Assembly (NCBI GenBank): GCA_047495785.1
Contig: JBLDXI010000013.1
Coordinates: 3,162,001 to 3,226,000, forward strand
Length of the DNA stretch: 64,000 nt
From: Lepidodermella squamata
Taxonomy: Eukaryota > Animalia > Gastrotricha
Direction: 5' to 3'
In this document: piece after piece, positions 19,401 through 32,695 of the stretch
Numbering within the stretch: the first letter of the stretch is position 1
Layout: every line of letters starts with the position of its first letter
Translations under genes and position numbers: made by a program
The notes under the pieces: generated by a model
Told to the model about the DNA's origin: nothing
The model's input: the letters and a program-made list of their open reading frames with translations, nothing else
Database searches by the model: none

Positions 19401-22004
19401 TCGTGGACAACATTTAGCGTTGCTTGCCTCCAAATTTACAAGGCTGCTTTAACGAGAACAGAAATAAACTACTTGAGGAGATGCCCAATCACATCTATTT
19501 CTGATATGAGAGCAGTTTTCAGCGCACCACTTGATGGGAATTACAATCTTAGGTCGGTAATTGACGAGAGCACTCTCTTCGCGACTGCGAATGTTGCTGG
19601 TAGCGGCTTTCCTTGGCAAATGGGCACAGATGACATAGCAGCGAAATCAGTCGACCTAACAAACAATAACTTCTTGTATGTTAACGCATCTGCTTACTTG
19701 TTTGGTAAGGGCAGCAAAGCTACAACGGCGTATGCTGTTGGAGTATTTCACTACAATCGAGTCAATACATCTGGCGCTGTGACTCCCGTCATTCAGATGT
19801 ACGACTCATCCAATAGAATAGCATGCCAATTGCGATTGAATTTGTCGAGAACAGCATTGTATACCGCTCAGCTTGAATCTAGCAGTGGAGCCATCTCTTC
19901 CTATGATGACTCATACACCAACGCATGGAACTTTCAAAATAGGTGGGCTCATCACATGATCGCCTATGAAATGGACAGTACTCCCAGACAATTCAGGGCC
20001 TCCATCAATGGGTATAGATTTGTTAGGATACCCATCGGAAGTTCAAACCCGCTGCTGATCGATCGTTTGACCCTAGGCCAGGAAATGTTGGCAGGCTCAC
20101 AGGGCAACGCTGAGTTTGCATGTCTAACAATTTTCCAAGGCTATCTCGCGCAGTATCAGGCTGCTGAGCTTGCTAGAGCGTGTCCATCATCAACCATACG
20201 TAATTTAAATATAAACAGCAACTTCGATTCATATCGTTAACATTTCTCATGCAGTTGAGGGTCATGTTTGCGAGAATGACCTTTCTTACAACGTTCAACA
20301 GATCACGGTATCTTCTGCGTACACATCGGCCGCTAATGTAACCTTTGATCAAGGTGCAGGAGTAAACAAGCTTTGGCAGGGCGATGCGAATACCCCAGGC
20401 TCGATTGCTTGTTGCTGGCAGCCGGCCACAGTTGACAGTAATCAGTATTTTCAAATAGCATTTGATCGAGAAATGATCATAACATCAATGGCCACGCAAG
20501 GGGATTATTCAACTGGTAATTATATAACTACATTCCGCCTGAGCACTGGTAATGGGCTGAACAAGCTAGTCGAAATTAAGGACCCAGCAACTGGTGTTGC
20601 TATGGTCAGTTCCCACTATGCACTGATACATCAAAACTGAACTCCAATTATTTGCAGATCTTTAATGGAAATTCAGATTCCAGGGGTGTGGTATGGCATT
20701 ACTTGCGGCAATACGTCACCGCTCGAATCCTACGGCTGCGACCGGCAACTTATATAGGTGGAATTGGTCTTCGCTGGAGTGTAAGAGGCTGCTCATGTAT
20801 GTCCTTGAGATGCATAGCTTTCAGTTCACATCTAAGATGGTTCATCGTTTGTTCATCTGCAGATCTAGGCTGTAACGCAGAATTAATGGATGGAAGCACT
20901 GAGTTCAATTATTCGTCAACTATATTCTATCCCGCCGGTGATTATCAATACGCCTATCTTTTCGACTCCCTGGTAGATTGGCAGCCAGCTGCAAGTGATC
21001 CGCAACCTTGGTTGCAAGTCATATTCGAAGGGTTGAGAATAATCACATCTTCGCTCGTGCAATGCAGCAGAAACTCAACAGCCTGGATAACTAAATACCA
21101 CTTGACGAGCAGTCTCGACGGCAAGTTGAATTGGGTCGCTCACACCTGGCGAAATAACGGCTCTCGGATCCGCATTTTGGACGGACCAACTGCCTCGCGG
21201 AATCCTCAGCCAATGATCAACTACCTAAATCCTTCGATCACTGCGAAATCAGTTCGAATTTATATTGACGACTTTTTCACAGCGCCAACTGGCCGTTTCG
21301 GATTCAAAGGCTGCATCTACTCAGATTTCGCGACTGACAATCTTGCCTCCCTAGGGCTTGTGATCAATGTTGGTGACAGAGTACCGAACTCCGCAGTTGA
21401 GGCCCAATTTCAGCAATCCTGCAATCCAGCGATTCAGAAGCTGTATTACAACAGCCGAATTCCAGTCGCATGCGTAAACCAAGTCTCTGGGCGTTACTTC
21501 ACCGTTTCCAGCTTTGCGCCTGGTTCTTCCATTGATTTGTGCCAGATCAGTGCGTTCAACGACAATGCAACTGATTTCGCGGCTTACAAAACTGTCCGCA
21601 CAAACAACACCGGAATTTCTGCATCAACTTTAATCGCGTTGACTATGCCTGGATCGACTAGTGGAAGTGCGACAATAGCTCAAAATCATTGGCTGCAGAT
21701 TGATCTCGGATTTTCTGTTGCGATTTCTAGAATCACCTTATCGACACAGGCTGATGGAAACTGGGTGGATGAAAACGCACCAGGCGTCGTGAAACTTGTT
21801 TTTCGCGTTGGAGAATCAGTTGGCGATTTGGCAATGACGAACGACGATATTTGCGACATTTTGAGCGATAGTTCTCAGATGCCGAATGTCGTCCCGGGGC
21901 AAGCGTTCAACGCCGATTGCACGCCTCCTTTGAACGGGCGTTACGTCACCGTCGTAAACGAAGGCTACCAGGCGATTCGAGTTTCTCGAATAACAACCAT
22001 ATGA
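16452..22004 (+). CDS. Large secreted mosaic protein: PAN/apple, F5/8-C x2, split F-lectin-like domain enclosing LamG x3 + F5/8-C x2, terminal F-lectin-like domain
   Basis: Signal peptide; CVSFC..EPSC...TCNL (PAN); WFRIDL, LTIDL..IQIQG, FNGNSD, LRVELLGC (discoidin); WFHLALVYD (LamG); WLQIDLG...GRYVTV (F-lectin); about 7 short GT-AG introns link the listed ORFs. Confidence 0.8.
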
Positions 22005-22552: not shown

Positions 22553-25414
22553 ATGAAGCCGACTTCGATTGGATATGTTATCCTATTCATCTCGCTTTTT
22601 TCAACAACTCTGGCCAGAAAGCCTAACTTGGTCAGCATCTCCAAACTGCTAAATGTCAAAGTTCTACATAAAAACAATACCTTTGAAAGGCCAACGATCG
22701 AGCAGTTGTTGGGCTTATCGTCGAATCATAACCTGACGCTATTCCGGGACGAAAAGCTGCCAGATGGCCGCCGCATACTTACCTTTACTATCGTCATTGG
22801 CGGTTATAGATTGGCCAGTGATCCTTTGATTTTCACGGAAGATGAGACTGAAGCCATAACATATGCATTGAGTGGTCAAATATTCGACGACATTCCACGA
22901 TATGACGAGCTTGCCAAACAGATAATCAAACACTCCGAAAGGATAAGCAATGTAACTAGTTACAACGCTTGCATAGCAGCCATTGGTGAGCAATACAACT
23001 TCACTGAGGTATAAACTCGACAGTCTTTTAGCAGATAGCCATACATGGTAAAATAACACAGTTATATGATGCTGAGCTCTGGAGTTATGGCACCGACCGG
23101 TATTTGTGGTATGATTCTGAAGAAGAATTCATGACGATGTACGAGGCCATCTTTGTCAACAGCAATCTGGATGAAGCGCTGAGATACTGTTTGATTGTTA
23201 CAATTGCTTGTTTTTCTGAATTTTCTTTGAATTTCCACAGCTTGCATGTTTGACATACTCAACGAAACTATGATAGCTGTAGCTCCAACATCGAGCTTCG
23301 CCGTTGAAGCTTCAGGAGGCAACAGAAAAATTGGCAAGCGGAAAGTGAATCTCGAACTCACCGAGAGACTCACGGAATTAGATGAGTGCATAGTTGAACA
23401 CTCTAAAGGATTATTCAGCATTTACGACATGGAGGGAAGCACTTCAAGCATTAACGCCAAGCAGCTGACCTATCCATGTGGCACTCTCATAGAAAACGAA
23501 GTATTCTTAAGACCGATCATACTTTTAGCACTTGGAAGTTCCACTTATAGGTGAATGGAGGTTACGGTGTTGCAGCAGACTGCATAGACTACGCTATTCA
23601 AACTCAGAAATGTCTCGCGAAGCATGGTAAGAAACTCACTAAATGTTTATACTTAGCTTGAATACTGATTCTGCAGTGATGTTCCACGAATTTGGTTTCG
23701 TCACAAACGGTAAACCGCTACGGATTCACATCAATTACGGGGATATGAGGGCTGCGGCATTCTGGAACGAGAACGGCTTATTTTTTGGTGAGAAACTGAG
23801 CCTAATCAACACTTGGTGATAATTTCTATCAACCCCAATAATCCCACTGCTAAATTCCCCCGGCGCGTAGGAAAGGTAGCTTTTAAACAAGTTTACGAAG
23901 TACAAAGAACAAAGGACACTCACCATATATTGGGCAGCGGGCTGCTCTCAGTGAGAACCCTGAGTATAGACGCTAGGGAATTTTATTTTAAGAGTTGTTT
24001 TGGTGGTGAACCCGCCACAAAGTAACCGTTTCCCATCAGCGCGCGGCTGAAAAGACTGCATACAATTGCGGAGGCATATTATAGCACGCTTCTAGGCTAA
24101 ACTGCGCAACACGGTGACATTTCCAAGTGAGATTTTGAGTTGTGATTTTATAAAAGGCAATGGCGATGCATCGCACGAATACCCGTCATGCTCAAGTATC
24201 GATTCCGTGTCACACGAAATCGGCCACGCGTTGACAGCCCGATTTTCCGGACTCATCTACTCGGGTGAAATGGGTTGCATGAATGAAGGTAACATTCAAG
24301 CCTTTGTCCCACGGTTAGCAGAGACGAAATCTTCATGTAACTAGCTTTCAGCGACATGACCGCAATGATGGTTCGCGCATGCGTTCGGGATACAACCGAC
24401 TGGCTATTTGACATTGATGCGCAAAAGGTTCGTGATGCTGCGAGCCGCTATCTGATTCGCAATCTTAAAAAGCCTACTTCGGACACCCAGCAAATTAAAA
24501 AATACAGCGAGTACAGACCCAACATGGACGTTCACGTCTGCAGCGGGATTTACAACCACGCGTTCTATTTGCTGTCTCAAACGCCACGCTGGGATATTTA
24601 CAAGGCCTACAAATTGTTCTATGGTGCAAATAGATTTTACTGGACTGTATTCGACAAAATGGCAGACGGTCTCTGCGGAATTCTCCAGTACGCAACCGGC
24701 AGCTTGAAAATGCCACTTAGAGAAGTCAAGGATATCACGGAAGCTTTCCGAAGAGTCGGAATTGTTACCGACGACAAGTGCGAATTGCCGGACGAGAACG
24801 TGACGAATTCGTTCATGGCCGTACCACTAACGAATTGCGTATCTCAGAGGAATCTTGCCGGACAAAGCGATGACGAGTTTTTTATTTTTACATATGAAGT
24901 GAAACAAAGACCTGGGAAACCGGTGCCTTCGAAACTAATAATTTCGCTATCAATACCTTCAACCAAAATAGATAACGGCGATGATGACGATGATGATGAC
25001 GTTGACGATGAGGAAGATGACGCTGAAGGCGATGAGAATGAAGATGACGATGATGACGATGGTGATGATGACGACGAGGATGATGATGACGATGAAGATG
25101 ACGATGATTCAGATGATTATGATTTGGATGTCGAAGATGAAGAGGACGATGACGAGGATGAGAATGATGCATCACATCTGATGGAAGTTGATCTACTCAT
25201 ATTTTATGGCTTGGAAGACGCTTTTACGAATGGCACTAGTACCAAAGCCGCAACTCTGATAGGTCAGACTGAATCTATACAGCTCGTCATTGAATGCCCT
25301 CCTATTGGTACTTACCAGTTCTTACTCATATCTCCGTCAGGTTCTTTTGGCGACGTTTCATTGAATGCGTGTTCCTTTACTTCAGATTCGGATGTTTGCC
25401 CGTTGAAGACTTGA
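22553..25414 (+). CDS. M4 thermolysin-family (vibriolysin/elastase-like) zinc metalloprotease with propeptide, PPC-like C-terminus and poly-Asp insert; about 7 exons
   Basis: Signal peptide; GGNRKIG, VNGGYG, AAAFW, HEIGH, spliced NEAFSD, DVHVCSGIYNHAFYLL, ANRFYWT. Confidence 0.9.
23799..24098. mobile_element. 300-bp non-autonomous DNA element in an intron of the M4 gene
   Basis: Termini AGCCTA...TAGGCT flanked by 6-bp direct repeat AAACTG; removal shrinks the 369-bp intron to 63 bp, the typical size. Confidence 0.75.
24979..25170 (+). repeat. Coding (GAT/GAC/GAA)n poly-Asp/Glu tract
   Basis: About 60 codons almost all D/E in the M4 frame. Confidence 0.95.
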
Positions 25415-26184: not shown

Positions 26185-26382
26185 TATATCAAAACTTGTG
26201 CGTAAAATAAAAAATTATGATTCATACCAAGTGTCATATTTTATTCGTTTTGTTGTCGGTATTATCATGTCTTCATTTCAGTTATCAGATAAAAAATGAG
26301 ATTCATCAGTAGGATCATTGGATAAAATCATCAAGTAGCAAGTCAACAAGTCAACTTTTGTTCTTTAGTGTTAAACCGTTTT

Positions 26383-28743
26383 TCAGAAGATGACACCAGC
26401 ATTCGGGGCCTCGCCGATGTAGCCAGGGCCGCCAATGTAACCCGGAGCGCCGACGCCTCCGACGAAGGGAGCACCAACGCCGTAACCGGCAGGGGCGCCG
26501 ATGAAGGCTCCGCCCTGGGTGCTGTCGATGACCTGGCGCCGTTGGTGGTGGGCGAAAGCGTCTTCCTCAGCTTCGATCTCGCGACGGTGGCGCTCGTCGA
26601 TAGCGCGGCGTTTGCGTTGAGCCTCCTCGTGAGCATGGGCCTGGGCGGCGTACTCCTCGTCGATTTCGCGGCGTTCACGCTCAGCAGCAACATGGGCATG
26701 AGCGGCTTCGTCGATTTCGCGGCGTTCACGCTCAGCAGCAGCGTGGGCATGAGCGGCTTCGTCGATTTCGCGGCGTTCACGTTGGGCGCTGTGGTCCTTG
26801 TTGTTGATCGAGCGACGCTTGCGGCCGTAGACACCACCCGGGTAGAAACCGCCGGGGTAGCCACCGTAGCCGTAGCCGCCGTAGCCACCGTAGCCGGGGT
26901 AACCGAAACCAGGATAACCTTGACCCCAGGCACCTAAGGAGAATAATTTCACAAATTTAGAAAATAATCACGCCGACAGAGAATTCAACATCTTTTATAA
27001 ATTAAAATTTCAAATTTCAAGATTTAATATTGTGAAGATTTTAAATTTCAAAAATTCCAATATTCAAATTTCAAATTTTTTAGATTTTAAATTTGCAATT
27101 AAAATTGATAATTACCAGGGAACAGCGATCGCTCTTCGTGATCAACGTGGTCAGCTTCATCGACTTCACGGCGCTTGATGGTGGCCTGGTTGTTGCGTTC
27201 ATGTTCCGGGGTCAGAACCGATCGCTTCTTCAGAGCAGACTTCTTGTGGGCCGGAATGGCACGACGTTGGCGGAGAGAAGCCGGGTGTTGGGCAGCAGCA
27301 GAGGCTTTGCTGATGGCACGACGTTCGCGCTGAGCCAAAGGCGACGAAACTTCCTCATCGATTTCGCGGCGTTGGCGGAAAGCAGCCGAGTGTTGGGCGG
27401 CCTTCAGAGAACGGCGTTGGCGCTGAGCGAACGGAGCAGAAGCGTCCTCAACATCGACCTCACGGCGTTGAAGCTTAGCATATTGCTCAAGGACAGTTTC
27501 GTCGTCGTCATCGATCTCGCGGCGTTCACGCTGAGCAGCGGCTTCGTGGTCGATCTCGCGGCGTTGGCGCAGGGTTTCCGGATGGTGAACTTCGCGAGGG
27601 TTAGCAGCACGGCGAGCGAACTCATGGTGAGCAGCCTCTTCGATCTCACGGCGTTCGCGTTGATGGTCAAACTCAACTTCATAATCGACCTCGCGGCGGT
27701 GGTTGTCAGCAGGGTGTTCGTAGTCCTCAACCTCGCGACGTTGGTGCTCCTTGTTAGCGAGTTCGCGGCGTTTGCGCAGAATGACACCAGGGTAACCAGC
27801 GCCATAGAAACCACCGATCGGGTAGCCGCCGAAGCCACCGAAAGCGCCAGGGAAGCCATAGCCGTAGCCGCCGTAGCCGAATCCGCCATAGCCAAAAGCG
27901 CCGGGCAGGAGGATGGAACGCTTCTTCTGTTCGTGATGCTTGTGCTCGTCGTCATCTTCATGAACCAGCTGGTCGAGATCACGGGCATGGCGAGCGACAG
28001 AGACCGAGCGGCGCTTCTTCTGGGCCTTCTTGTGGTCCTCATCCAGAGCACGGCGTTTGCGTTGGGCGGCGAGTTCGCGACGTTTGCGCAGAATGACGCC
28101 TGGGTAGGCGGCGCCGTAGATTCCACCGACTGGGTAGCCGAAGCCGTAAGGGGCGTACGGGAAGCCGTAACCGACACCTGGCAGCAGAATCGAACGCTTC
28201 TTCTTGTGAGATTCGTCGTGATGGTGGGCGGCGTCTTCGTCGATTTCGCGACGGTGGCGTTGTTCCTGTTCATGGGCGGCGTCCTCTTCCTCGTCGGCGA
28301 GTTCGCGACGCTTGCGTAGAGCTTGAACGGCAGCTTCGGCCTCAGCCTCGCGGCGTTCTCGACTCGAGTGGGCCGACAACTCGTGATCAGCGTCCTCGTC
28401 GAGGTTCAATTCGCGGCGTTTTCGGCTCATGCCGTGCTGATCGTCATCCTCGGATTCTTCGGGGACCAATTCGCGACGTTTCCGGAGAATTGCGCTTGGG
28501 AAGCCAGCACCGTAGAAACCAGGGTAGCCGAATCCACCGAAGTGGCCAATGCCAGGATAGCCATAACCAATACCGCCGTAGCCGTAACCAAGAGCGCCTA
28601 GAAAATGATGAAATATTTCGAAAATTAAGGCGGATTGTTTCAATTATACCAGGGACAAGAATTTGACGCTTTTGCTTGTCGGATTTTTCAGCCTCGCAGA
28701 ACGAAGCAACAACGAGCAGTGTTGCTAGGATAGCAAACTTCAT
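26383..28743 (-). CDS. Secreted 708-aa polyprotein precursor with >30 di/multibasic cleavage sites, Gly/Tyr/Pro-rich and acidic His-rich peptides; 3 exons
   Basis: Exons 28743-28650, 28597-27116, 26933-26383 total 2127 nt in frame; signal peptide MKFAILATLLVVASFCEA; repeated RKRR/RERR/RQRR/KKR. Confidence 0.88.
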
Positions 28744-29072
28744 TTTCCTCGGAAAAAACGGTAAAACAGTAAAACAAAGTGTAAAAACTACTAATGTGTT
28801 TAGTTGAAAAGTGATTGATGTTTTAGCAGCTGCTCAGGCAGGGTTTTTAAAGGCGCTATCGTGCGTTGTTACGCAAATTCATGGCACGTGTGTTGGCGCC
28901 AAAAAGTTCACACGCGACCTGAAAAGGTCAAACAAAACCTGTGCACCTATTATTAGAAATCGATAAAAAAAATATTCACATTCAACTACTTTATTCGATT
29001 TTCAGCATTTAGAATTTAATTTCAAGTCAATTTTCGAAATGTTTAGCTTATTATTCGAGGTATTTTAACCAA

Positions 29073-30675
29073 TTAATGGCCATGAGGCAGGAGTGAGTCC
29101 ATATCAGCAACAACATAAGCCAGGGTGGTCCAAACCGTGGCGCATAGATCCAAGTTGGTGCTGTTTTGCATGGTCATTGTATCAGCTTCAGTGTGATGGT
29201 ACCAAAAGTACTTGTCAGTTGTTCCAAGGGTGTAGAGTTCAATGCCTGGAACGCCATTATTTGTCACGAATTGACCCGGATCGCCGGGGACCTGGCCATC
29301 AACCGACAGTAGGCTGGCATTTATCGGCTTTAGAAGGTCCATGACTTGTTGCATGATCACTTGAGATGCCGAGTTACCTTAGCGAAACAAATAATTAAAA
29401 TTTATGAAAAGAAATGAAAAGAAATGAAAAGAAATGAATTTGTACCTGCATAATGAACACCCAGTGGAGCGAATGTCCCAGAATCAGATTCCATCACGAG
29501 GCTGAGAGCCGGTGACTCGTTCTAATTAATAAATAATTAATTAATAATTGTTTTTTAAATTTCAAAAAAGTAAGTATTCCATTCCTAATAAATTTGCTTA
29601 ATTAATATTTTTACCTGATGAGCGGCGTAATAAGCCTGAGCTCCAATATAGCCAAACTCCTCAGCCGCCCAGAAAACCGCTCGAACAGTTCGTTTCGGCT
29701 TCAAGTTGAGCTCAGAAAGGGTGACTAAAGATTGCCACGTGATCGCAACACCACCACCGTCATCCATGGCACCCTGGCCAACATCCCAAGAATCGAAATG
29801 GCCGCCGAACAAAACCGTCTCATTCGGTAGAGTTGAACCCGGCCATTCCGCAACAATGTTGAAACTTGTCACATCACCATCGTAACGCGTATTGACGACT
29901 AAATTCATTTGTAATTCAGCGTTATTGATATGCTGTAGCCGCCATAGCAGCTCGGCATCTTCGACAGTAATACTCGCACTTGGAATATCAGGCACTCCAT
30001 CAACTGGCGGGTTCTTACCACCAGTGTGAAGGGTGTAGAGTGACTGAGGGGTGACACTTCGAACTAGGCAAGCAACGGCGCCTTTTTTCGCAGCGGCAAT
30101 ACCGCCATTCCCGCGATAATCGACAGAAGTCCCGTACCCCTGCCACGGTTGATTGAACACGACGATTTTGCCCTTGACCTGGTCATCGGGCAGGGCGTTT
30201 AACTCGTCGAATGACTGGACTACGATGACATTAGCTGTGATTCCACCGGGAGGGGTGGCTGTGCTGTTCCCGAGAGCGAGAATGGCAATGTTCTTATAAC
30301 GCGGCTGAAGTAGGGTGCCCTGACCCGGCGGGTCGAGGCGGTGCCAGTTCGGAATCCCAGGTACAGGTTCGAAATGAACTTTCATTCCCGCCGCGGTCAG
30401 CTTACCCGCGATCCAGGTTGCCGCCCTTTCGTAGCTAACGTCAATTGCGAATCGGTTGCCGTACGTATCGGTCAGTTGTTGTAGCCGATTGAAGGTCGCA
30501 TTTTTACCCGGACCGTTCAGGTAATAATTTCGAATCTGATCCGAAACATCTGAAAATATTGTCAAAATTGATAAAAAAAATCGATTTCTCTTGGCAAACC
30601 TTTGTATTTTGCAGTTATGTTAACCGCGGCAGCGTGACAGCTGAATGCTGCCAAAATTAGGAGTACCAACTTCAT
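29073..30675 (-). CDS. CPQ: Carboxypeptidase Q (M28) paralog 2, 4 exons
   Basis: Exons 30675-30600, 30549-29615, 29521-29446, 29377-29073 (463 aa); HFDSWDVGQGAMDDGGG, AEEFG, YHHT. Confidence 0.93.
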
Positions 30676-30996: not shown

Positions 30997-32695
30997 TCAG
31001 TGTCCATGAGGCAGTAACGCGTCCAAATCGGCAACAACATAAGCCACGGTAGTCCATAGGGTTGAGCAAAGGTCCAAATTAGTGCTGTTGTGCAGCGTCA
31101 TCATGTCAGCATTTGTATGATGGTACCAAAAGTATTTATCGGCAAACCCTTGCGAATACAATTCCACCCCAGGAACGCCGTCATTTCTGACAAATTGACC
31201 CGGATCGCCGGGCGGTGAATTATCGGCGAAAAGGCGGCTAGCGTTGATAGGCTTCAGAAGATCCATAACTTGCTGCATTATTGCTTGGGCTTGAGAGTTT
31301 CCTAAAATTGTTGAGCGTACAGAAAAAATAAGGAATTATTATTGAAAATTTAAAGAAAAATGAAATTTTCCAACAACTTTCAAAAAATTGAAATTATTGA
31401 AATTTTCCAACAACTTTCAAAAAGTTGAAATTATTGAAATTTTCCAACAACTTTCAAAAAATTGTGGTCCTCCTCAATTAAAATTCTGAAATTTTAAACC
31501 AATATGAAAAAGACTATCACAATTTCAATAAGCATGCGCACCTGGAATTCTCCTTATTTTTGAAACAAAATTACAAACCTGTGAAATGAACCCCAACGGG
31601 AGTAAAAGTACCCGAGTCTGACTCCATGACCAGACTGATCGAAGATGCCTCATCTTTATGCCTTTCATAGTAAGCCCCGGCCCCGATATAGCCATATTCC
31701 TCGCCTGTCCAGAAAACCGCTCGAACAGTGCGTTTTGGCCTGATGCCAAGTTGAGCCATCGTCACTAATGACTGCCACGTAATCGCAACGCCACCTCCGT
31801 CATCCATCGCACCCTCACCCACGTCCCACGAGTCGAAATGGCCGCCGAAAATGACTTTTTCATGCGGCAAGGTCGAGCCAGTATATTCAGCAACGATGTT
31901 GTAACTCGTCGCCTCGCCGCTATACATCGTATTCACCGTTAAATGAATGAGTATGGTCTCTTTTTCGTAGGTCTGAAGCCGCCACAACATCTCGGCATCT
32001 TCAACGGTGATACTCGCCACGGGAATGTCTCGAACACCTGCAGGCGGGTACTCCTTCGCCCCGGTGTGGAGTGTATACAGAGACTGGGGGGTCACACTTC
32101 GAACTAGACAGGCGACTGCTCCTTTCTTCGAGGCAGCTATTCCGCCCGATGAGCGATATTGAACAGAAGGGCCGTAGCCCATCCAGGGCTGGTTGAAAAT
32201 GACAATTTTCCCATTTACCATGTCATCGGGTATTGCATTCAATTCATCGAAAGATTGAACCACAATTGCAGCTGCTAAAATTCCCTCCGGTGGCGTTGAA
32301 GAGCTGTTACCAAGCGCGAGAATTGGGATTGTTTTCGTCAGGTAATTAGTCATGACAACCGCTTGACCAGGTGGGTCGCCTCGGGTCCAAGCTGGCACGC
32401 CTGGCACTTCTTCAGTCCAAACTTTGTCGATGCCAGCGTCGAGAAGAGTAGCTTGAATGTAACTAGCTGCCTTGTTGAAACCGATGCTGTTAACCATTCG
32501 ATTGCCGAATGTGTCTGTTAAGGTGGCTAAATTGTTGTAGGTCGCGCCTTTACCCGGTCCAGAAAGGTAAAAATTCCGAATTTCATCAGCAACATCCCGG
32601 TATTTAGCAGTAATACTTCGTTGCAATGAAGCAAGAGTCGTTGGTAGGAAAATCAGAGAAAATATAGTGCTGAGAATGGTGAAATTATGCATCAT
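30997..32695 (-). CDS. CPQ: Carboxypeptidase Q (M28) paralog 3, 2 exons
   Basis: Exons 32695-31579 and 31301-30997 (473 aa); HFDSWDVGEGAMDDGGG, GEEYG, ESDSG, YHHT. Confidence 0.93.
31361..31464 (+). repeat. Intronic ~37-bp tandem repeat x3
   Basis: TGAAATTTTCCAACAACTTTCAAAAAATTG(AAATTAT) repeated three times. Confidence 0.85.

Follow-up and report, generated by a model that had tools for sequence, protein, structure and literature searches.

Secreted precursors that convertases cut into several peptides are well known as a kind. Rep1 of Ustilago maydis is a secreted pre-pro-protein cut into peptides that form amphipathic, amyloid-like surface fibrils (PMC3133707), and the fungal KEX2-processed repeat proteins (KEPs) release many peptides from dibasic or Kex2-type sites (PMC6339444, PMC9769878). 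In Drosophila, the Baramicin A precursor is cut at RXRR furin sites and yields several peptides, not all of the same kind (PMC8423362). The nematode NLP (nlp-24 to -33) and caenacin (CNC) peptides are secreted, low-complexity and Gly/Tyr-rich, with basic processing sites and clustered paralogues (PMC2453101), and the Schistosoma proteins p14 and p48 are secreted, Gly/Tyr-rich, stored in granules and cross-linked at Tyr by tyrosinase into a hard shell (PMC3499410). Here we describe a gene that resembles each of these in part. It lies on the minus strand between 28851 and ca. 26225 in a stretch of 64,000 nucleotides, with a GC content of ca. 43%, from the gastrotrich Lepidodermella squamata (assembly GCA_047495785.1, contig JBLDXI010000013.1, positions 3,162,001 to 3,226,000), which is referred to as the window and numbered from its first letter. 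Its 708-residue product consists of five Gly/Tyr/Pro/Phe-rich peptides, hereafter GY peptides, set among many short, mostly acidic spacers. The explanation that we favour, and to which we give an even chance, is a secreted, convertase-processed precursor in which the spacers would serve as solubility tags and the GY peptides would become extracellular structural material.

Rep1 and the KEPs share with the window protein the principle that one secreted precursor gives many peptides, and for a structural reading it is Rep1 that comes nearest in function. The fungal proteins differ in their KR sites, near-identical repeated cores and lack of long acidic-spacer runs, whereas the window gene belongs to an animal genome, encodes two unlike peptide classes and has no sequence similarity to them. 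With the NLP and CNC families the window protein has in common Gly/Tyr-rich secreted peptides and precursors with basic sites, but its GY peptides are longer, uncharged and Pro/Phe-containing, with xILxPG and PGVIL ends. NLP and CNC precursors have fewer than 100 residues and, unlike the window protein, carry no acidic spacer runs. The likeness to these families that the original prediction had drawn holds for composition only, as neither Pfam nor phmmer found a sequence relationship. Baramicin A and apidaecin-type antimicrobial peptide (AMP) precursors are, like the window protein, 'protein operons' of more than one peptide kind; Baramicin gives ca. 5 cationic products, has no alternating acidic helical spacers and shows no homology, compared with ca. 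33 predicted products here. Lamprin and insect chorion (PF06403, PF01723) have Gly/Tyr/aliphatic low-complexity blocks like those of the window protein, and to our knowledge they are not polyproteins cut at convertase sites. The flatworm eggshell precursors p14 and p48 resemble the GY peptides in being secreted and Gly/Tyr-rich, with no sequence similarity detected; p14 is, as far as we know, one continuous Gly/Tyr protein with neither convertase sites nor acidic spacers. Some phylogenomic analyses place gastrotrichs near flatworms (PMC6468455). What sets the window protein apart is the combination of ca. 33 products per chain, two opposite classes, charge balance, neutral GY peptides of 35-50 residues with mirrored ends, and its occurrence in a phylum that has hardly been studied. 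No description of such a GY/acidic precursor layout was found in the databases or literature searched.

The gene is real, spliced and transcribed. Read from the sequence, it is compact with three exons, and its minus-strand translation runs from the ATG at 28743 to the TGA at 26385-26383 with no internal stop, the codons adding up to 31+1+493+1+182 = 708 across the exons. The original prediction had joined three open reading frames (ORFs) into one precursor, and this is borne out by the GT..AG introns, the 708 in-frame codons and the junctions in contigs of the complementary DNA (cDNA) type. The junction between exons 2 and 3 (27116/26933), singled out beforehand as the place where the prediction could fail, is present in transcripts of three runs, X1, X8 and X2, as a joint 26931->27114 that skips 182 nt (CT..AC on the plus strand). 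Depth in these runs is zero at 26988-27073 inside intron 2, and the DNA run X7 covers the intron continuously. The joint for intron 1 (28596->28649, skipping 52 nt) was found in X2; X1 has loose ends at 28598 and 28649 whose letters match the ends of exons 1 and 2, and the same intron is missing from the Logan cDNA contig L001 of another run, which encodes P0001, the protein of a related species. X1 is cDNA because a template-switch adaptor is fused at 28819; we take the adaptor to be the reverse complement of the SMART template-switch oligo. The transcript 3' end lies at ca. 26225 (X8 record 22). The cDNA contigs have depths of hundreds to thousands, depth being a poor measure of expression. 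Both introns are of phase 1 and interrupt a Gly codon at the equivalent spot of the N-terminal motif of a GY peptide. The features are given below in the order of transcription, with a slash marking an intron position.

28844..28851, minus strand: TATA-like box TTTAAAAA, 25-32 nt upstream of the mapped cDNA 5' end
28744..28819, minus strand: 5' untranslated region; the X1 contig stops at 28819 and continues as CCCCATGTACTCTGCGTTGATA
28650..28743, minus strand: coding exon 1, 31 codons and the first base of a Gly codon
28690..28743, minus strand: signal peptide MKFAILATLLVVASFCEA, residues 1-18, judged by eye; identical in P0001
28666..28689, minus strand: propeptide EKSD-KQKR, directly after the signal peptide
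28485..28665, minus strand: GY peptide 1, residues 27-69, Q...FPSAIL, 43 residues, net charge 0; spans intron 1
28598..28649, minus strand: intron 1, 52 nt, GT..AG, phase 1, within QILVPG/ALGYG
27116..28597, minus strand: exon 2, with the remainder of GY peptide 1, the whole of GY peptides 2 and 3, 21 spacers and the five N-terminal residues of GY peptide 4
28423..28482, minus strand: polymorphic 60-nt segment, one spacer and its site, ELVPEESEDDDQHGMS-RKRR; missing in some alleles or strains
28089..28193, minus strand: GY peptide 2, residues 167-201, SILLPG...YPGVIL, 35 residues, charge 0; KKKR and RKRR borders
27777..27917, minus strand: GY peptide 3, residues 259-305, SILLPG...YPGVIL, 47 residues, charge 0; KKR and RKRR borders
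27129..27764, minus strand: 14 consecutive spacers, residues 310-521, acidic or with His, all terminated by RR, RxRR or KR
26824..27128, minus strand: GY peptide 4, residues 522-562, SLFPG...GGVYG, then RKRR; spans intron 2
26934..27115, minus strand: intron 2, 182 nt, GT..AG, phase 1, within SLFPG/AWGQG, AT-rich
26383..26933, minus strand: exon 3, with the remainder of GY peptide 4 (VYG-RKRR), six spacers, GY peptide 5 and the TGA
26657..26781, minus strand: 51-nt tandem repeat, 2.5 copies, 97% matches, EIDEAAHAH(A/V)AAERERR
26386..26535, minus strand: GY peptide 5, residues 659-708, QVIDSTQGG...NAGVIF, charge -2; protein C-terminus
26225..26382, minus strand: 3' untranslated region, AATAAA at 26245-26240; X8 record 22 runs 75 letters past 26300

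We then inspected the precursor for processing signals. The joined 708 residues were used for local counts and for the alignment with P0001; Pfam, database searches and fold predictions were done exon by exon. By inspection, the signal peptide is charged at its start, its hydrophobic core spans 13 residues and the residue at -1 is small; these features, together with its conservation in P0001, support a secretory signal. The protein contains 32 basic clusters, all Arg-terminated, so that P1 is Arg at 32/32. The strict pattern [RK]-x-[RK]-R is found at 24 of the 32, whereas 5000 shuffled sequences of equal composition have 2.3 +/- 1.4 on average and never more than 9, and 81 of the 86 Arg residues lie within clusters. 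The claimed excess of convertase-type sites is confirmed, with the strict ones far above the shuffles. The P1' residue is E (19), S (6), A (5) or Q (2), and P2' is I/L/V at 30/32 sites; an aliphatic P2' and a non-basic P1' are compatible with furin-type convertases. The signal peptide aside, the chain has 120 D+E and 117 K+R and an isoelectric point of 7.08, the charge of the acidic spacers being almost fully offset by the basic sites. By its signal peptide, its excess of sites and their conservation, the protein looks like a proprotein-convertase-processed multi-peptide precursor.

The five GY peptides are 35-50 residues long (3.6-4.7 kDa) and rich in Gly, Tyr, Pro and Phe. Their residue ranges agree with the sequences quoted in the original prediction, and their net charges, from GY peptide 1 to 5, are 0, 0, 0, 0 and -2. 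They have mirrored hydrophobic ends, starting with [QS]-I-L-x-P-G and finishing with (Y/F)P-x-(V/A)-I-L/F. The spacers have 4-28 residues, are mostly acidic and Ala/His-rich, and most commonly start with E-[ILV]-[DE]; EIDEAAHAHAAAE is one of the predicted acidic peptides. The division into two chemically opposite classes, neutral GY peptides and mostly acidic spacers, is upheld by these counts. The spacers, put at about 28, number 27, or 28 if GY peptide 4 is released. Two other details needed correction. The GY borders fall at convertase sites nearly everywhere, the exception being the N-terminus of GY peptide 4, which the final spacer of the 14-unit run meets at a single Arg (EER before S). 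The proposed G-RKRR amidation signal is confined to GY peptide 4, as an amidation-type Gly before RKRR is present in 1/4 internal GY peptides and the other three would end in a free Leu.

P0001, the only word-index match of exon 2, can be aligned with residues 1-298 of the window protein. Over this range it shares the layout, the peptide termini and 10/10 alignable sites. Of the site residues, 37/38 are identical, the one change being at an x position. The ratio of nonsynonymous to synonymous divergence (dN/dS) is 0.07 for GY peptides, 0.12 for spacers and 0.06 for basic sites, with dS ca. 0.8-1.0 in the GY and spacer classes and a lower dS, ca. 0.2-0.36, for sites and signal peptide, where codons are few. 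Within the signal peptide there are 4 synonymous changes and the protein sequence is unchanged. As judged from this codon comparison, GY peptides, spacers and sites alike are under purifying selection. The C-terminal part of P0001 (residues ~276-368, L001 ~830-1113) is Arg/Pro/Gly/His-rich and out of register; it probably reflects a mis-joined or frame-shifted short-read contig over repetitive GY-coding DNA, and the last ca. 90 residues were excluded.

Between samples and species, spacers are gained or lost as whole units, with the reading frame and the sites retained. Absence of the 60-nt segment is seen as a joint 28422->28483 in X7 (DNA), X8 and X2, and P0001 lacks the 20 residues that this segment encodes. 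The 51-nt repeat differs in copy number, as X7 and X8 contain a joint 26782->26681 that goes back 102 nt and hence adds 102 nt, or two copies. Intron 2 is mostly made of AT-rich tandem repeats at 26993-27094, with periods of 7, 23 and 46 nt, and the DNA contigs of X7 break or diverge within these repeats, which suggests that the intron is polymorphic in length.

A full-length match to an already characterised family, named in advance as grounds for giving up the prediction, was found in none of the Pfam, PDB, word-index or phmmer searches. Pfam hmmscan of the three exons gave 0 families at E <= 1, Lamprin and Chorion included. The PDB sequence search returned a chance match only (E 0.32), and the ESM Atlas feature search gave no usable match. 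Exon 3 had no match among the 8000 candidates sharing most words, the number taken in each word-index search, from which low-complexity words may have displaced relatives. When exon 2 was searched exhaustively with phmmer in a set of 1.84 billion protein representatives, the only matches were P0001-P0004, with P0003 as the one credible look-alike added to P0001; neither this search nor the word searches of exons 2 and 3 revealed kinship with nematode NLP/CNC. The other two were rejected as compositional matches only: P0002, which has TPR-like repeats, and P0004, a GY-tailed bacterial lipoprotein. Metagenome-contig scans with P0003 and exon 2 yielded no confirmed relative, and Rfam had no match in the whole 64-kb window. 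The search for paralogues, suggested from the outset, was negative within the window, where tblastn of the product against the 64 kb found internal repeats only and no second copy. Outside it, traces were seen, in that loose contig ends of the species' DNA and cDNA runs encode ..YPGFIG-RKRR, KRQIFPG.. and VGLGYGGLG, which suggests further family members elsewhere in the genome.

P0003, from a metatranscriptome, and P0005 have 272 and 277 residues and are encoded by a JGI contig without introns. Their order is signal peptide, EKR followed by Q, GLGYGG-type block, YP-x-VI-G-RKRR and short acidic spacer. Each has four GY blocks, three of which are followed by G-RKRR and a spacer, and the fourth ends the protein. 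The same layout is found in the window protein, with a signal peptide, KR followed by Q/S/H and an aliphatic start, a GY block, a YP-x-aliphatic end, RKRR and an acidic spacer, and the signal peptide of P0003 resembles that of the window protein. The window protein is likely, but not securely, homologous to P0003/P0005. Proteins of the P0003 type are presumably cut, because all three internal peptides end in Gly-RKRR, a classical amidation signal. While the window protein has no Lamprin or Chorion match, its look-alike P0003 has a recorded match to Pfam Lamprin, whose members are matrix proteins of the GGLGY type that self-aggregate.

The search with P0003 also returned many marine-eukaryote proteins in which a GLGY block, a Cys pair, RKKR and an EADDEAEAEA-type spacer are repeated. 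A set of them (P0007, P0022, P0027, P0062, P0066, P0080 and P0086) matches the Lamprin and Chorion Pfam models, and P0086 additionally bears a chitin_bind_4 cuticle domain. Their arrangement suggests an arthropod-like layout for cuticle polyproteins that is so far undescribed and runs parallel to that of the window gene, and it hints that polyproteins built of GY block, RKKR and acidic spacer may be more widespread than recognised.

Under the favoured explanation, the signal peptide would be removed first. Convertases of the furin/PC (proprotein convertase) type in the late secretory pathway would then cut after each of the 32 basic clusters, and a carboxypeptidase would trim the basic residues, freeing ca. 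100 Arg/Lys per molecule. The products would be five uncharged, aromatic, Gly-rich peptides and ca. 27 short acidic His/Ala-rich ones, with pyroglutamate on the two Gln-initiated GY peptides and a C-terminal Tyr-amide on GY peptide 4. Before cleavage, spacers and sites would form charged helical carriers that leave the precursor electrically balanced and soluble; the spacers would thereby act as removable solubility tags, restraining the aggregation-prone GY peptides until they are cut. The idea that spacers keep GY peptides soluble fits the protein because the precursor is charge-balanced. The AlphaFold2 models described below, with helical spacer-and-site runs and disordered GY blocks, also speak for such carriers. 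Once freed, the GY peptides would make up an extracellular material that self-associates or can be cross-linked at Tyr. We consider it very probable that the protein is proteolytically processed. That the GY peptides are structural, whether in cuticle or scales, eggshell or adhesive, is a close call with perhaps a shade less than even support. A structural role is favoured because the GY peptides are uncharged, aromatic, Pro/Gly-rich, hydrophobic-ended and strongly conserved. By analogy, they are more like matrix components that self-associate or are cross-linked at Tyr, such as the GGLGY proteins of lamprin and chorion or the eggshell precursors p14 and p48, than like signalling peptides or cationic antimicrobials. 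More tentatively, the gene might represent a new animal route to extracellular material, in which a charge-neutral polyprotein smuggles five insoluble GY peptides that later self-assemble. It is similarly doubtful, though conceivable, that such a route is the counterpart of the fungal repellents, with the His-rich acidic peptides as a second product, for example a metal- or pH-dependent regulator of assembly.

Several points weigh against the favoured explanation. Cleavage and the structural destination are predictions made from the sequence. The N-terminal border of GY peptide 4 (..HEER before SLFPG) is a single Arg and non-consensus for a convertase. The 14 consecutive spacers have no GY peptide between them, and the spacer dN/dS of 0.12 holds for residues 1-298; these observations suggest that the acidic peptides themselves have a role that depends on their sequence, which the solubility-tag idea leaves unexplained. 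The 14-spacer run is accounted for by none of the readings considered here, and the acidic His/Ala peptides may have their own function. The long helices predicted by AlphaFold2 could make the intact protein the functional form. The link to P0003 is weak, with E 2.9e-5 in the library search and 0.014 in a composition-adjusted pairwise BLASTP, and convergence is possible given the low complexity. Contig depths, finally, are unable to rank expression.

Among the alternatives, host defence fares best, and we still regard it as unlikely. Here the GY peptides, and perhaps the His-rich acidic ones, would be antimicrobial or antifungal effectors on the body surface. Gly/Tyr-rich secreted peptides are infection-induced putative AMPs in the C. 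elegans epidermis (PMC2453101), the Baramicin precursor is cut at RXRR into several peptides of which one is Gly-rich (PMC8423362), and the paralogue traces and copy-number variation would fit a diversifying effector family. However, the GY peptides lack the net positive charge of most membrane-active AMPs, a dN/dS of 0.07 speaks for conservation and not for diversification, and Pfam and phmmer found no similarity to NLP/CNC or any AMP family.

A second possibility, which we consider improbable, is that the protein stays uncleaved as a modular matrix protein, a 75-kDa block copolymer in which charged helical rods space the GY blocks. The RxRR motifs would then be, with the same low probability, part of a helix-stabilising charge pattern, following a logic like that of suckerin and lamprin materials. 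The balanced charges and the purifying selection on spacers agree with this possibility, and so do the predicted folds. In single-sequence AlphaFold2 models, the spacer runs are helical with predicted local distance difference test (pLDDT) values up to 97, and the GY blocks are disordered (<50). Exon 3 has a helix H39-141 with pLDDT >90, and exon 2 has H68-132, H165-222 and H339-417, with several helices of 20-80 residues in all. The 14-spacer run is modelled as mostly helical segments interrupted at prolines. Comparison with ER/K single alpha-helices gave a divided result: a long isolated helix is predicted, but the composition is neither dominated by E, K and R nor K/R-interchangeable. In the spacer regions E+K+R reach only 41%, next to 15% Ala, 9% His and 9 Pro, and typical ER/K helices exceed this E+K+R share. 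The basic residues are restricted to RxRR-type tetrads with an invariant Arg at the last position. A charge-pattern helix would need neither Arg at P1 in 32/32 sites nor an aliphatic P2' in 30/32. Moreover, K(K)R and RKRR directly abut the GY peptides; Gly-RKRR and Gln after KR occur here, in P0003 and in the paralogue traces; and entire spacer units are gained and lost.

A neuropeptide or hormone precursor, in which one or both peptide classes would act on receptors and the rest would be ordinary acidic spacers, can be set aside as very improbable: the signal peptide, dibasic/RxRR sites, acidic spacers, one amidation Gly and two N-terminal Gln do follow the standard grammar of neuropeptide precursors, but the candidate products are 35-50 residues long, low-complexity, mostly unamidated and variable in length through indels, the short peptides differ among themselves and are not copies of one conserved core, Pfam and phmmer matched no known neuropeptide family, and the cDNA contig depth in the hundreds to thousands also speaks against it, though depth is a poor measure.

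If the favoured explanation is true, an animal would build a structural or surface material from convertase-released peptides instead of intact proteins, for which the fungal repellents are the only clear precedent that we found. The spacers would be natural, built-in, cleavable solubility tags, of relevance to biomaterials and to the recombinant production of sticky peptides. The gene would also offer the first molecular handle on gastrotrich cuticle, eggshell or adhesive. A limited literature search found no molecular work on the matrices of these three, and nothing relevant was found in the GGLGY and gastrotrich cuticle literature.

The genes surrounding the precursor gene include several peptidases. 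Two tandem genes at 29073-30565 and 31571-32695, both on the minus strand, encode PA-domain and M28 peptidases that are carboxypeptidase Q-like, and the first of them ends ca. 250 nt upstream of the precursor transcription start. On the opposite strand, ca. 1 kb downstream of the 3' end of the precursor gene, the ORF at 24356-25414 (+) encodes a thermolysin-type M4 C-terminal helical domain (PF02868, E 1.2e-17), after which comes an acidic tail of low complexity. As M4 peptidases are uncommon in animals, the product may be a secreted protease that is lineage-specific or was gained by horizontal transfer. Further along, the ORF at 20652-22004 (+) encodes an F5/8 type C (discoidin) domain and a NedA-like galactose-binding domain.

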